Shown: one piece after another, positions 26,194-45,479 of the stretch
Position numbering within the stretch: position 1 is the stretch's first letter
How the letters are laid out: each line of letters opens with the position of its first letter
NCBI GenBank assembly: GCA_025201805.1
Contig: MU619250.1
Span: 1-64,000, forward strand
Length of the DNA stretch: 64,000 nt
From: Parasitella parasitica NRRL 2501
Taxonomy: Eukaryota; Fungi; Mucoromycota
Reading direction: 5' to 3'
The notes under the pieces: generated by a model
What the model saw: the letters and a program-made list of their open reading frames with translations, nothing else
Told to the model about the DNA's origin: nothing
The model's database searches: none
Program-made: the position numbers and the translations under genes

Positions 26194-27414
26194 CTACTCT
26201 CTTTTGAGAGGACGAGCAACCTTCATAGCTTTGTAATCACCGTTTAAGGGAATACCGAGCTTCATGATTTCAGTAAATACATTCCAGTCCAATATCTTGG
26301 TCATTAAAATCTTCATAACAACCGTGATGGGCCCTTGATCAGAGACAACAATCTTGCCGGCATTACGACAGATGGTATCGGCAATGACAGAAGGAGGCGA
26401 TGAAACCTTCTGAGCCGAAGTGAGGGCAGACATCTTGCCAGCGTTGCTGTAAAAGTTAGAGTCGATAGGAGAGGGATGCTATTTTCGAAAAACGAAATAA
26501 ATGGTGAGGAATATGCGTATCAAAAAAAAAAAAAAAAAAAAAAAAAACGTAAACTTACAATGACAAGAACATCGATCTTGGCCTCGGCTAATTCAGCGGC
26601 AATAGAGCCAGCAAAGGTGGTAAGGAAAACTTTGGAGGAAGCTTGATAAAAGCGCATCGATTTGTTAGTTATTAAGCCATCTATTCACATGAATGCTCTG
26701 GCAGCTTACCATACAGCGCAGACATAGGGTTGGGGATGAAACCGGCGCTGGAAGAGGTAAAGGTGATTAGGCCTTTGAGACCCTTATTTAGCATTTCATC
26801 AGCAAAATGATGTGTCAAGATCAGGCCAGAAGTGACATTAGTGTGGAAATTGGACATCTCACGCTGCATTGCAACATCAGCATAGCCGCCAGTTGTGATA
26901 TAGCCAGCATTGTTGCACAAAATTTGAACATCAATATCACTAGTAGCCTCCTTGACGGCATTCAAGTAGGTCTCTCCAGAGGGCTCAGAGAGATCACAGC
27001 CAACAAAACGAAATTCGACATCAGGAAACTCTTTGGTAATCGTTTCCTTGAATGTAGCAAATACAGCATCATTAAGAGCCAGAATAACGACATTCAAACC
27101 TTGACCAGCAAACTTTCGAACAATCGCAGCGCCGATGCCAGAGGAGCCACCGGTTACCAATGCCCTGCATTTGCGACTATAAGTACAGGGACCTCAAATG
27201 CGTCTGTCTGATCGCTGATTCACTTACCATTTGGCATTGTACTTTTTCCTCAGGTTTTGCTCAGGGCAGCCATAGGCACCGTACGCAACCAAAATAAGAT
27301 AGGGACAGACTGCCAATACGCCGATCCAGAAAAAGACTATGCGTACAGTGAGCAACATGATGCATTTACAGCAACAAGCGTAACTTTGTGCTCACCTGAA
27401 GTGATAGAGATCAT
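26194..27414 (-). CDS. Short-chain dehydrogenase/reductase (17-beta-HSD / ketoacyl-reductase-like), N-terminal membrane anchor
   Basis: Spliced MISITSVFFWIGVLAVCPYLILVAYGAYGCPEQNLRKKYNAKW|ALVTGGSSGIG. Also NNAG, TSSSAG and catalytic Y|ASSK. Confidence 0.88.
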
Positions 27415-33123: not shown

Positions 33124-33668
33124 GCTTTGTATTTATAATAAATGGGTTTGTACCATCACATCTTGTAGTGATTATCAAAAGTGGGATAGAAATGAGTTAT
33201 GCACCATGATAAGAGTTCTTTTAATTTGTAGGAATAGCTATTTATTTGCTTTAGTGATTAAAAACCACCAAACACGAATGTGTTTGTAGAGATTTTGAGT
33301 AAACCTTGTTTGGATGCCTAAATATGCTACATTTCATGTTTTTCGTGCTATTTTTGCAGCTGTCTTTAGAAGTGGTTAACTTGCCAGTGTTTGTTATTTT
33401 ATTTACGTTGTAAATGTTCAATATGAACTTCACAAGATGTAGACATTGAGTATGCTAGTATATATTAATTGAAATACGCTTGGCTCAAAATGCTAATTTT
33501 GTGCGTTATTGACCCCCTATAAACCTCTAATTTATATCGATCGATTCCCCAAAGGTCAGAGTAATATACTAATACAATTTTGTAGCATTTAGAGATATTT
33601 TATTTTTCTGTTAAAATCTGCAAATTTTCATGAGGGAGTATAAGGAAAAATTGGGGATTTTTACACAA

Positions 33669-34418
33669 TGTGGTTTTTAAGCTAAAAAACGAAACTTTTT
33701 ACTATTGTTTGTGCGGACAAAATTAAGCACCAAAGTGTCCTTCTTCATTTTGTTGTTCAGGTCTTTTAGTTTACATTACCAGTTTTTGATATATTTACGA
33801 AAAACTGTTTTTCAGTTTTTTAACTTTTACGAACAATTTTATCAGGTGTTTTTTTAGAAAAGAAATAGAATATTATAGATGATATTAATTAACATGTATT
33901 CTTATTAATTGGCTATGCGTGGTTAGTATATGTTTTGGATTGATAAAATACTTTAAAAGTGGAAAACGCTCGTTTGTATTAAACCGAATGTTTGAATCAT
34001 CCAATACTACGAAACAAATTTCAACCCCCGTAAACCAAAAATCGCACCGCATCAAAAAATGCGAAGATGCAGTATACCAAAAAAATGTACATGTGAAATA
34101 CACAGACTTGCACATCTCACTTCGCAAGACTTGAGGATACGATTACAATAGCTCGTATTTGGCTTATTTCGATTGCTCAGTGAGCATATGACGCTTTGCT
34201 CAACTATAAAATCTAAAATCAGTAAATCCGATGGCAATAATTTGGATTATCTGATGTACCGGAAGACTTTACTGCCTGGTAATTTGCAAACAGTAACTGA
34301 ATTGGCAAACAAAGCAATAGCTAAACAAACGAGAGAGCAAACTACGCTTAACTTGTGTACTGTATAGAGCAGTTTACACTGATGCTGCACCAGCTAGAAA
34401 ATGCCTAATTCTATGACC
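33669..34418 (+). repeat. Long direct repeat copy 1 (750 bp, ends at N gap)
   Basis: Collinear with 37107-37708 from TGTGGTTTTTAAGCT to ATGCCTAATTCTATGACC; last 95 bp identical. Confidence 0.92.
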
Positions 34419-34691
34419 NNNNNNNNNNNNNNNNNNNNNNNNNNNNNNNNNNNNNNNNNNNNNNNNNNNNNNNNNNNNNNNNNNNNNNNNNNNNNNNNNN
34501 NNNNNNNNNNNNNNNNNNNNNNNNNNNNNNNNNNNNNNNNNNNNNNNNNNNNNNNNNNNNNNNNNNNNNNNNNNNNNNNNNNNNNNNNNNNNNNNNNNNN
34601 NNNNNNNNNNNNNNNNNNNNNNNNNNNNNNNNNNNNNNNNNNNNNNNNNNNNNNNNNNNNNNNNNNNNNNNNNNNNNNNNNNNNNNNNNNN
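34419..34691. other. Assembly gap (273 N)
   Basis: N run between direct repeat 1 and the inverted array remnant. Confidence 1.
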
Positions 34692-34743
34692 TTGCGTTCC
34701 TTCCCAAACTGATTTTTTCTTACTTTTTGTTCAGATAATTATC

Positions 34744-36558
34744 ATGACAACATCAGACATAAAAACAACTTGTAACAAGTGCAATACATCGGTTGGAGGG
34801 TCACTCAAACACCATGAAAAGAATTATCATACATCTTCTATTTCAGTGAGATACATGGAAAGCGAAGGTTTTGTTCTTTTTAATATTTCCTGTTTTGTTC
34901 GTTAACATGTGCGAATTTCTTTCTGCCAGATTCAGAACAACCAACCATCCTTCTTTTGGAACGCAATGAGAAGACGGACCAATTTGAATGCCCCTTTTGC
35001 AAGAAGACATGGGCTACATGTTCAAGCACTCGCAGCCATTTTTATCGACATGCTGGTAAATGCTGTGATTCTTCGGGTAGGAACGAATATAACTACCGAG
35101 TCTTTTCTGCTCACCATTATTATATCAAACACAGCTAATTCATCTGGTGATGAAGAAAGTGACATTGAGGACACAACCATTGCCACCATCGAAATGGAGG
35201 CCACAGAACTCATCACTGTGTTTCCTGAATCTATTGACAGCCCTCGAAGAAGCTTTGATGAATCAATTTTACGTGCTTTAAGACAATCAGGCGGTTCTAT
35301 CTGTGAGAGAAACAAAGCCCTGTGGATTGCAGATACATTGAAATTACAACCATTTGCATTGCTGGACGACAATCAAGTGGAAGAAATAGCTCTAACCCAC
35401 TACGACAATCATATGCCTTTGATGACCAAGAGTCAGGATCACACTTTTCGCGTCAAACATGTCACAGCTGGCAAGAAACGTGCATGGGATGATAGTCTTA
35501 TATCGACAAATGCAAATTCAACAACGAATATCGAAGCAAGTCTCATGTCAATCCAACATTACGGACCTTACGCCCAACAATTATCCACACGATGCTACAA
35601 GCAGTTAGATATCAATTCATGTCAATTATTGAACGACGACTGGACGTTTTTGCCTCAACTACGATATGCCTGCGCCCAATTGCTTGCCGGTGCGATTATT
35701 ATGAACAAAAACAATGAGGCTGTACTTGTCAACACCGTGGAGATTTATGGACGCCAGCGTTCCCTCGATGTTCATCGAGAAAACTTTGTGAACAAAAAAG
35801 GAAAATCAGCATCCTCATCTTTACCACCTGTCACCACCAAATACCACCACACATGGGCAACAATTATGGCTGACAATGAAGGCGATAAGTTAGTTGTGTG
35901 AACCAAGACATTGAACGCATTAATCACATCAAGTCTCCGAATCGATTCCATTCATGAAGCAAGTGTTGGGGGGATCATCTCGCATTTTGAATTGGACGAA
36001 AGTGCAGCATTGACAGCGTCAATTTTCTTGGACAGCGATTCGATCAAAAAAGCCAGCAGTTTGGCAAGCAATCGAAATGCAAACAAGATTGATCGGTTTG
36101 ATCTGCGATACCAACTTCGACAATTACGATCAAAATTCCAATACCCTTCAACGTACCTCTTTTGTCGCGCGTCGAGCATCTTTGCAAATGACGTGCGGTC
36201 ACAACCATATAGCATTTTCACCTTATGTGAAGGACCCGACACAGGACGTGAATCAGCAGCGAAAATAGCCTCGAAACTTTTTCTCAACATTGCGGAAACT
36301 GTCCAATCTAACACTCATCCAACGTTGCCAAAAACTCTTGTAAATTCTTTATGGACGAAGTGCCAAGATGGTCAAGTGAAATCTATACTGCAACAAATTG
36401 TTGAACTATACCACGATGAAAACGTTATGGATATCTTGGAAAACCATTTCCTCAACGAAAAATTGAAGTCTTTAGCCAACTTGATGTCAACAAGCCTCGT
36501 TTTAGCAAACAAATCAGTGGCAGAAAATGTCAAGTCTCGTGTCCAAAATGGTTATTAG
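34744..36558 (+). pseudogene. Two-C2H2-zinc-finger protein of unknown family with one in-frame TGA (pseudogene, sequencing error or readthrough)
   Basis: Exons 34744-34867 (CNKC...HEKNYH), 34930-35055 (FECPFCKKTWATCSSTRSHFYRH) and 35135-36558 give 557 codons with clean GT-AG introns. A single TGA at 35899-35901 (DKLVV*TKTLNALITSS) splits one frame. Confidence 0.75.
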
Positions 36559-36688
36559 TGCGCTCTTGTACCAATCTCAAATTTTTTCATCATTTCAACC
36601 TTTGAATAAAAATTATCCTTCTTTTCAACATTAAGTGCTGCGTCTATCTTTTTACTTTTAAAACATTTTGTCATCATCATTCACTTGA

Positions 36689-36915
36689 GCTAAAAAAAAA
36701 AAAAATAGTGTGAAGGAACGCAATTGGAACGCAGCTGGAACGCAGTTGGAACGCAAGCCAAAAAAAACAGTGTGGAGGAACACAGTTGGAACGCAGCTGG
36801 AACGCAGTTGGAACGCAGTTTGGAACGCAAGCCAAAAAAAACAGTGTGGAGGAACACAGTTGGAACGCAGCTGGAACGCAGTTGGAACGCAGTTTGGAAC
36901 GCAAGCCAAAAAAAC
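36689..36915 (+). repeat. Higher-order tandem array: 11-bp GGAACGCAGYT monomers in ~74-bp units
   Basis: GCCAAAAAAA unit starts at 36757, 36831 and 36905 (period 74), with a degenerate first unit from 36689; 14 GGAACRCA cores in total. Confidence 0.95.
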
Positions 36916-37106
36916 TAACCACCTTCACATTGACAGCCCATTAAAAATTCATTCAAGTTCGATAGAAATTTCTCGCAAATGTTGATAGTGCCAATTTCTT
37001 TTCTTTTAAATCTAAAAATTGGCAACCAAATAAATGTTCAAGAAGATTCCAGCATAATAACATTTCCCATTTTGTTCTTCAGGTCTAATTAGCAATTTCC
37101 ACAAAT

Positions 37107-37708
37107 TGTGGTTTTTAAGCTGAAAAACAAAACTTTTTACTACACAAAATTAAGCACCAAAGTGTCTCTCTTTGTTTGGTTGTTCAAGTCTTTTAGTTAA
37201 CATATTCATGAAAAACAGTTTTCTAGTTTTTCAACTTTTTTGGACAATTTTACAAGGTGTTTTTTTAGATCAAAAATATAATCCAATAGATGGTATTAAT
37301 TAGCATGCTTTAATTAATTGACTAAACATTGTTGGCAAATGTTTTGGATTGATATAATACTTCAAAAGCGGAAAATGTTCGTTTGTTTTAAACCAAACCA
37401 AAAAAATATACATGTGAAATACACAGACTTGCACACGGTATCTCGTACTTGGCTTATTTCGATTGCTCAATGAGCAAATGACGCTCTCTTAAACTATAAA
37501 AGTTGAAATCAGTAAATCCGATGGCAAAAATTTGGATTATCTGATGAAGCAGAAGACTTTGCTGCCTGGTAATTTGTAAACAGCAACTGAATTGGCGAGC
37601 AAAGCAATAGCTCAACAAACGAGAGAGCAAACTACGCTTAACTTGTGTACTGTATAGAGCAGTTTACACTGATGCTGCACCAGCTAGAAAATGCCTAATT
37701 CTATGACC
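37107..37708 (+). repeat. Long direct repeat copy 2 (602 bp)
   Basis: Homologous to 33669-34418 with substitutions and internal deletions (one of ~90 bp); followed by a T-run. Confidence 0.92.
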
Positions 37709-44874: not shown

Positions 44875-45479
44875 NNNNNNNNNNNNNNNNNNNNNNNNNN
44901 NNNNNNNNNNNNNNNNNNNNNNNNNNNNNNNNNNNNNNNNNNNNNNNNNNNNNNNNNNNNNNNNNNNNNNNNNNNNNNNNNNNNNNNNNNNNNNNNNNNN
45001 NNNNNNNNNNNNNNNNNNNNNNNNNNNNNNNNNNNNNNNNNNNNNNNNNNNNNNNNNNNNNNNNNNNNNNNNNNNNNNNNNNNNNNNNNNNNNNNNNNNN
45101 NNNNNNNNNNNNNNNNNNNNNNNNNNNNNNNNNNNNNNNNNNNNNNNNNNNNNNNNNNNNNNNNNNNNNNNNNNNNNNNNNNNNNNNNNNNNNNNNNNNN
45201 NNNNNNNNNNNNNNNNNNNNNNNNNNNNNNNNNNNNNNNNNNNNNNNNNNNNNNNNNNNNNNNNNNNNNNNNNNNNNNNNNNNNNNNNNNNNNNNNNNNN
45301 NNNNNNNNNNNNNNNNNNNNNNNNNNNNNNNNNNNNNNNNNNNNNNNNNNNNNNNNNNNNNNNNNNNNNNNNNNNNNNNNNNNNNNNNNNNNNNNNNNNN
45401 NNNNNNNNNNNNNNNNNNNNNNNNNNNNNNNNNNNNNNNNNNNNNNNNNNNNNNNNNNNNNNNNNNNNNNNNNNNNNNN
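44875..45479. other. Assembly gap (605 N) bounded by poly-T/poly-A
   Basis: N run in the PTR2 promoter region. Confidence 1.

Follow-up and report, generated by a model that had tools for sequence, protein, structure and literature searches.

The locus described here lies within a stretch of 64,000 nucleotides from the mould Parasitella parasitica NRRL 2501 (assembly GCA_025201805.1, contig MU619250.1, positions 1 to 64,000 of the forward strand), which is referred to throughout as the window. It contains a spliced gene for a zinc-finger protein, preceded by an assembly gap of 273 N and followed by an array of short monomers; two long direct repeats (DR1 and DR2) lie outside these. An earlier note, made from the sequence alone, had drawn attention to the direct repeats, the gap, an inverted monomer beside it, the spliced finger gene and the 14-monomer array, all of which are present; the direct repeats are real but start further left than that note had placed them, at 33649 and 37087. 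We consider it rather likely that the segment at 34.4–36.9 kb is a dead copy of an undescribed family of small inverted-repeat DNA elements of Mucoromycota, whose own protein is the favoured candidate for moving it. The features, with the basis for each in brackets, are as follows.

33542–33971, no strand: copy of an older, low-copy dispersed repeat (72–76% identity to contigs C99, C51 and C82)
33649–34418, + strand: DR1, left copy of a local direct duplication, which stops exactly at the gap (self-comparison)
34419–34691, no strand: assembly gap of 273 N, putative cover of a left inverted CTGCGTTCC array forming the left terminal repeat (gaps at paralogues and inner-edge match)
34692–34743, + strand: inner edge of the putative left terminal repeat, comprising the inverted monomer TTGCGTTCC, a T-run and the 5′ leader (inverted match)
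34744–34867, + strand: exon 1, with the start codon and a first CxxC...H...H finger (81% DNA match to the spliced transcript L053)
34930–35076, + strand: exon 2, with a classical C2H2 finger, CPFCKK...HFYRH (zf-C2H2_4, E 0.0045, below cut-off; match to L053)
35135–36558, + strand: exon 3, encoding an acidic linker, a small α/β domain, a glycosylase-like domain and a helical C-terminal domain, with one in-frame stop (translation, paralogue alignment)
35593–36231, + strand: equivalent of the predicted alkyladenine DNA glycosylase (AAG)-like fold, residues 134–346 of the intact C75 paralogue (coordinates transferred by alignment)
35740–35781, + strand: family signature VEIYGRQRSLDVHRE, intact in the window copy (alignment of 73 relatives)
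35899–35901, + strand: in-frame TGA, a Gly codon in relatives, which splits the glycosylase-like domain in half (translation, alignment)
36559–36697, + strand: 3′ trailer and inner part of the right terminal repeat, with weak inverted likeness to 34692–34750
36698–36914, + strand: right array, 14 monomers GGAACRCA(GTT) in 2.7 units of 74 bp (array type also found downstream of the M. velutinosus copy)
36915–37086, no strand: 172-bp spacer from the array to DR2, with no match in the DR1 flank or the M. velutinosus copy
37087–37708, + strand: DR2, right copy of the local direct duplication (self-comparison)

The exon structure read from the sequence agrees with P0005, a protein of 563 amino acids (aa) encoded by one uninterrupted open reading frame (ORF) on L053, a spliced transcript contig of 1856 bp from a related species, which matches all three exons. 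The spacing of the exons differs between the window and L053 by 65 and 58 nt, which fits two introns, one of 62 nt together with a 3-nt indel and one of 58 nt. Since the N-terminus aligns from residue 1, the gap contains no coding sequence, and since it lies upstream of the start codon, no reading frame spans it. The gene is not intact, owing to the TGA in exon 3, which the earlier note had missed; the closest paralogue and the M. velutinosus copy both have GGA (Gly) at this position. Because the nonsense codon falls in the middle of the AAG-like domain, the window copy is probably inactive. The exons and the two halves of exon 3 were searched separately and never joined or read through the TGA; for the protein as a whole, intact relatives found in nature were taken (the C75 copy, P0004 and P0005).

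The right array consists of 14 GGAACRCA monomers (36715–36903) organized in the 74-bp units listed above with A-rich spacers. A pattern of two adjoining monomers has nine matches there against 0.00 expected by chance, and does not occur elsewhere in the 32.8-Mb assembly. On the other side of the gene, immediately right of the gap and 52 nt before the ATG, stands a single inverted monomer TTGCGTTCC followed by a T-run; over these 30 nt, complementarity to the inner edge of the right array is 77%. A weaker inverted likeness to the inner right repeat continues for ∼ 60 bp from the gap edge, up to ATGACAA at the start codon. An ORF of 41 aa on the minus strand (36555–36680), which begins ATGATGATGACAAAATG, is as far from the right array as the real start codon is from the array position on the left side, and it may be the relic of an inverted first exon.

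Each half of exon 3 has 27–30 matches in the genome, at 27–73% identity and on more than 25 contigs, and among these are nine with open frames of 446–539 aa and at least ten with internal stops. None of the paralogue loci examined carries GGAACGCA arrays. Most full-length copies are flanked by inverted repeats of their own, built of 10–12-bp monomers that differ between subfamilies:

C75: perfect inverted repeat of 31 nt, its copies 2109 nt apart; GGTACGCA-type units with A-runs; gaps starting within the arrays on both sides
C116: inverted repeat of 323 + 105 nt, 99–100% identity; outer 11-bp CTCACTTTTCT arrays; gap inside the left array
C19: inverted repeat of 91 nt, 96% identity; 10-bp GAAGTGTKCT monomers; gaps on both sides
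C64: inverted repeat of 127 nt, 87% identity; 12-bp arrays
C333: arrays at both ends of a 2318-bp contig
C1: inverted repeat of 721 nt, 100% identity; 12-bp arrays
C5: no inverted repeat assembled; 35-copy array of 12-bp monomers; gaps on both sides

Inverted repeats at both ends, composed of tandem subrepeats, are thus seen at C75, C64, C116, C19, C333 and C1. At three of these (C116, C64 and C1) the repeat takes in the first exon or exons of the gene itself, so that the gene faces a truncated mirror copy of its own 5′ end. The family is multi-copy, its copies are decaying, and they are sited between inverted arrays. The earlier proposal that the gene sits inside modular inverted repeats, as one of a multi-copy family bracketed in this way, is therefore borne out at the level of the family. 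The simple bracket was not seen at more distant copies (Cunninghamella, Mortierella and Rhizopus). A distant member in Mortierella alpina (L063:3125-5066) has a 21-bp array of ∼ 37 copies upstream of the gene, where an array with the reverse-complement core (TGCAATCA) is also found; the inner array overlaps the annotated start, and no downstream array was seen at this member. A Tc1/mariner-like unit with inverted ends of 77 nt (94% identity), and an ORF with an N-terminal helix-turn-helix-like region, directly adjoins the C64 family copy (L031:6102-7667).

Gaps in the assembly very often fall within these arrays. At five of the nine other loci (C75, C116, C19, C5 and C52) a gap abuts or lies inside a visible array, and at nine of ten loci, window included, at least one gap is found within 1.5 kb of the gene (13 such gaps counted), against a window background of about one N run per 21 kb. 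The further N runs in the window are at 2102–2111 and 44875–45479. The Joint Genome Institute (JGI) assembly of P. parasitica is Illumina-only (PMC10079182), which fits the occurrence of gaps at inverted arrays. The estimated size of the window gap, 273, may be compared with the 217 of the right array. By analogy with paralogous copies, whose arrays often contain gaps, and in view of the inverted inner-edge match of ∼ 60 bp to its right, the 273-N gap probably hides a left inverted CTGCGTTCC array. To that extent, by analogy and not by assembled sequence, the earlier suggestion of a hidden array stands. Perfect inverted repeats of 95–98 nt, about one read length, were noted at or near the edges of large gaps flanking family copies (L030:2458-2555/8934-9031, L035:586-680/7023-7117 and L034:6802-6896/8481-8575); these are either real or artefacts that arose where contigs end in palindromic DNA.

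Pfam searches with the window pieces, the intact paralogue and 73 diverse relatives recovered C2H2 fingers only. Family zf-C2H2_4 was found in 31 of the 73 (best E 1.9e-7), and exon 2 of the window reached 18 bits; all other hits to the individual exons and pieces and to the intact paralogue were sub-threshold noise. The protein family is large, with 1525 clusters at 50% identity, and its named members, from Mucorales, Umbelopsis and Mortierellales, are all labelled hypothetical. We found neither a description of the family in the literature nor a Pfam family for it, in agreement with the earlier view that it is undescribed. No Pfam family of the DDE/RNase H, HUH, tyrosine recombinase or serine recombinase type was detected in the 73 members, and no such fold appeared among the structure matches; the earlier statement that no transposase is recognizable thus holds for both kinds of search.

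The remainder of the protein, previously described as an unrecognized C-terminal part, indeed has no Pfam family but contains a predicted domain of known fold. The AlphaFold (AF2) model of the whole intact C75 paralogue has a predicted local distance difference test score (pLDDT) of 84.5, and its residues 134–346 match human AAG (1ewn_A) with a Z of 8.6. A model of the domain alone, built from the 73-sequence alignment (pLDDT 93.7, predicted template modelling score 0.91), matches the same chain with a Z of 10.4 and a root-mean-square deviation of 4.0 over 168 of 200 residues, at 7% identity. The rows that follow do not exceed Z 3.8 and come from C-terminal formyltransferase domains, which we take to belong to the structural fold class of AAG, and only 14 chains reach Z 2. 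A search of the ESM-Atlas gave a template modelling score of 0.64 to a PF02245 cluster. On these models the central domain is predicted to have an alkyladenine-glycosylase-like fold. In the alignment of 73 sequences, E71, D80 and P227 never vary, and Y73, R75, H82 and E84 hardly do, which defines the family motif ExYxR...DxHxE (VExYGRxxxxDxHxE, at 35740–35781 in the window). Its spacing E-x-Y-(8)-H equals, as a lead only, that which we take to hold for Glu125, Tyr127 and His136 of human AAG. The profile search of the PDB returned only chance MukF rows, the ESM-Atlas feature search gave uninformative scores at or below 0.80, Rfam and tRNA scans of window 32–40 kb were empty, and a canonical PF02245 gene is absent from the genome.

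In two subfamilies, copies from different species resemble each other far more closely than host genes do. The M. velutinosus copy is 93% identical in DNA over 1450 bp to window 35123–36569, and ∼ 340 bp downstream of it is an array like that of the window copy, with GGAACGCAGTT monomers and A-rich spacers making up units of 93 bp. Its flanking genes are syntenic with contig C161 of the P. parasitica genome (67–77% DNA identity), and C161 lacks the unit. Between the window and M. velutinosus the element gene has a synonymous divergence (dS) of 0.16 and a nonsynonymous to synonymous ratio (dN/dS) of 0.28, whereas four flanking host-gene blocks have dS values of 0.70, 1.0, 2.2 and saturation; a fifth block (GNAT) was excluded because its frame is off by a stop. 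Over 2160 bp that include introns and untranslated parts, the C75 subfamily shares 90–91% identity with sequence of Chlamydoabsidia padenii; it also matches a Logan contig at 95.8%. The TXNDC17 proteins of P. parasitica and C. padenii share only 63% identity. Logan contig L046 offers one flank junction only. Non-syntenic sites, decayed copies and low interspecies dS together make it very probable that the array-bracketed unit is a copy of a mobile family, as had been suggested.

The hyphae of Parasitella fuse with those of other Mucorales, to which it can transmit genetic material, and hyphal fusion is a plausible route for transfer of the element. Horizontal transfers of transposons, mostly DNA elements, have been described as especially frequent in Mucoromycotina (preprint, 10.1101/2025.06.16.659975).

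Several copies lie in perfect palindromes. In M. velutinosus (L052:6525-14691, JASEJX010000016.1) an inverted duplication of 3603 nt at 100% identity surrounds a 961-nt centre; it mirrors the 3′ end of the gene, the array and 2.5 kb of flank, and replaces the finger exons. The N-terminus of the annotated M. velutinosus protein ATC70_006129 derives from the mirrored arm. In C. padenii (L061:1-8408, JAIWND010000001.1) two head-to-head genes of the family lie within an inverted duplication that is perfect over at least 3227 nt, and they are flanked by oppositely oriented tandem arrays of 236-bp units. With C116 and C1, whose palindrome arms of 323 and 721 nt are 100% identical, this brings the total to four copies, from three species.

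The long direct repeats are a different matter. DR1 and DR2 are 75% identical over their first 340 bp and 84% over their last 343 bp; the likeness climbs from left to right, from 75% to 84–92%, the final 95 bp are identical, and DR1 has four extra blocks of 11 to 88 bp relative to DR2. Gene conversion or an effect of assembly could lie behind the gradient and the identical final stretch, which is at a contig end. No additional copy of the full repeat exists in the genome, none of eight other family copies has long flanking direct repeats, and the M. velutinosus copy shows no match to them. Moreover, an older dispersed repeat of about 430 bp, with its start 107 bp to the left of DR1, makes up the left part of DR1 and recurs at C99:61317-61746, C51:98846-99132 and C82. 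We read the direct repeats (620–770 bp) as a local duplication peculiar to this insertion or its later repair and outside the design of the element. The earlier inclusion of them in the element must be given up, given their absence from the eight other copies and the overlap of DR1 with a repeat that begins outside it. As a separate candidate, an element of the long terminal repeat (LTR) type, including terminal-repeat retrotransposons in miniature (TRIM) and large retrotransposon derivatives (LARD), was rejected: the tRNA scan yielded no related site, DR2 is not preceded by a purine tract, and the repeats lack TG...CA ends.

We propose that the element is a unit of ∼ 2.2–3 kb, with one three-exon gene for a protein of ∼ 560 aa between inverted repeats of 10–12-bp monomers. 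The predicted order in the protein is two N-terminal C2H2 fingers, an acidic linker, a small α/β domain, the AAG-fold domain and, at the C-terminus, a helical domain. Each monomer measures roughly one helical turn, and its sequence is specific to the subfamily; the monomers would be bound in phase by the fingers at both ends, which would bring the ends together. The AAG-like domain might then act on the DNA there, such that flipping or removal of a base would lead to a strand break from which excision or copying could begin. Breaks at the inverted arrays would sometimes be mended by fold-back priming, yielding perfect palindromes. That the element's own protein is the mobility enzyme falls a little short of an even chance in our estimation, and we favour it over a passenger role. 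A fuller proposal, which we hold tentatively and regard as on balance doubtful, is that these elements form a new superfamily of eukaryotic DNA transposons whose sole protein combines zinc fingers with an AAG-fold mobility domain, whose movement starts from base flipping or removal and not from DDE, HUH or recombinase chemistry, and which has spread horizontally among Mucorales, plausibly via hyphal fusion between the mycoparasite Parasitella and its hosts.

Other explanations concern either the layout of the window or the role of the gene. The gap might reflect only a wrong scaffold join or ordinary sequence, in which case the window copy would have no more than the right array and a lone inverted monomer. 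Identity of DR1 to DR2 is complete over the last 95 bp, which stand at a contig end, and 75–92% elsewhere, a possible contig-end artefact, and the assembly, probably that of the source strain, is Illumina-only (PMC10079182). Yet gaps adjoin inverted arrays at five other copies, the ∼ 60 bp right of the gap resemble, in inverted orientation, the inner edge of the right repeat, and the gap estimate is near the right-array length, all of which leaves this reading improbable. One could also regard the direct repeats as the functional ends (LTR-, TRIM- or LARD-like, or those of a composite element) and the arrays as incidental, for two direct copies of 620–770 bp do flank the gene and array. We give this almost no weight: eight other family copies lack such repeats, the M. 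velutinosus copy has no match to them, part of DR1 sits within the older dispersed repeat, nothing like a tRNA or primer-binding site, a purine tract or TG...CA ends is present, and Pfam detected no reverse transcriptase in the window pieces or the 73 relatives.

With regard to the gene, the unit might be mobile through an unrelated transposase and the protein a passenger or accessory, for instance a targeted base-removing enzyme that counters silencing marks on the unit's own repeats. The protein has no known transposase fold or family, and, as far as the account in PMC12730594 goes, fungal DNA transposons do carry TET/JBP dioxygenases beside their transposases. However, each subfamily has its own gene copy and its own monomer, the units contain no second ORF, and the several-fold lower interspecies dS spans the gene itself, with a dN/dS of 0.13–0.28 as expected for a protein that is needed; we therefore think a passenger role unlikely. 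Much less probable still is that these are ordinary host zinc-finger regulators expanded in the lineage, with the arrays as autoregulatory binding sites and no mobility at all. Orthologue-like conservation across genera, purifying selection and the one spliced transcript contig from a related species would suit such regulators, but non-syntenic sites, many decayed copies, a dS that is lower than in host genes by a factor of about five or more, non-coding DNA that is 90% identical between different Mucorales families, and inverted repeats at both ends that take in the gene's own first exon would not.

A number of observations weigh against the interpretation of the unit as a self-moving element with an AAG-like enzyme. 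The putative left array of the window copy is unseen, with only what would be its inner edge lying outside the gap, and three of ten loci (C5, C58 and C52) have no bracketing inverted repeat in the assembled sequence. Element termini, target-site duplications and a clean empty site are all undefined, the outer ends lying in gaps or palindromes. Upstream of the element is a TXNDC17-like ORF (PF06110, 32682–33142, + strand), whose product is 100% identical to a protein from P. parasitica, and synteny with M. velutinosus breaks directly downstream of it: in M. velutinosus (L065) TXNDC17 is followed by adh_short, the orthologue of which lies 5 kb upstream in the window and is inverted (26195–27339, − strand). 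The interval after TXNDC17, where the earlier note had proposed to look for an empty site in relatives, was compared in M. velutinosus, but because the break falls exactly at the site it does not provide a clean one. The upstream array in M. velutinosus is the mirror arm of the palindrome and so not an independent left end, and some of the perfect palindromes, those in long-read assemblies included, could be assembly artefacts. As for the enzyme, Foldseek support for AAG is weak (E 0.015–0.1, probability 0.93–0.96), the 73 members give no sequence match to PF02245 at E up to 10, and AAG chains were not matched in the PDB profile search. The residue-by-residue equivalence of the motif to the active site of human AAG is putative. 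To our knowledge no known transposon uses a glycosylase fold, and the proposed chemistry is without precedent.

If the proposal is true, standard transposon and Pfam annotation has overlooked a class of fungal mobile DNA, represented by 1525 protein clusters without a family name, and a DNA-glycosylase fold becomes a candidate for an unprecedented mobility chemistry. It would provide concrete transposon transfers between Mucorales genera, involving a fusion parasite, and would explain why gaps and perfect palindromes recur in assembled mould genomes. Each subfamily would also supply its own matched pair of fingers and monomer, and together these would be a natural set of DNA-binding modules with their targets.

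Among the nearest known systems are elements of the Foldback type (Drosophila FB; Galileo of the P superfamily), which have long terminal inverted repeats made of short subrepeats in variable number, a small internal coding part and an association with rearrangements. The present family has the same kind of inverted ends of short tandem subrepeats and a small coding part, and perfect palindromes at four copies correspond to the rearrangements. It differs in having an unrelated protein, for which structure searches gave no THAP, DDE or RNase-H-like fold, in having a mould as host, in terminal repeats that can include the first exons of the gene, and in that no target-site duplication is defined. 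CACTA elements (for example the 12-bp motifs of En/Spm TnpA), Ac/Ds and Mutator likewise have many phased short motifs near both ends, inverted and presumably bound by a domain that the element encodes. These elements possess a DDE transposase and defined short terminal repeats and duplications, none of which is recognizable here.

The predicted fold of the central domain matches that of AAG/MPG (PF02245), whereas the domain has no sequence similarity to these enzymes, is fused to C2H2 fingers and additional domains, and occurs in multiple copies inside inverted arrays. A DNA-base-directed enzyme fold inside a fungal DNA transposon has a parallel in the TET/JBP-carrying fungal DNA transposons, which, within the scope of the account in PMC12730594, have a separate recognizable transposase nearby; in the units described here the glycosylase-like protein is the only gene.

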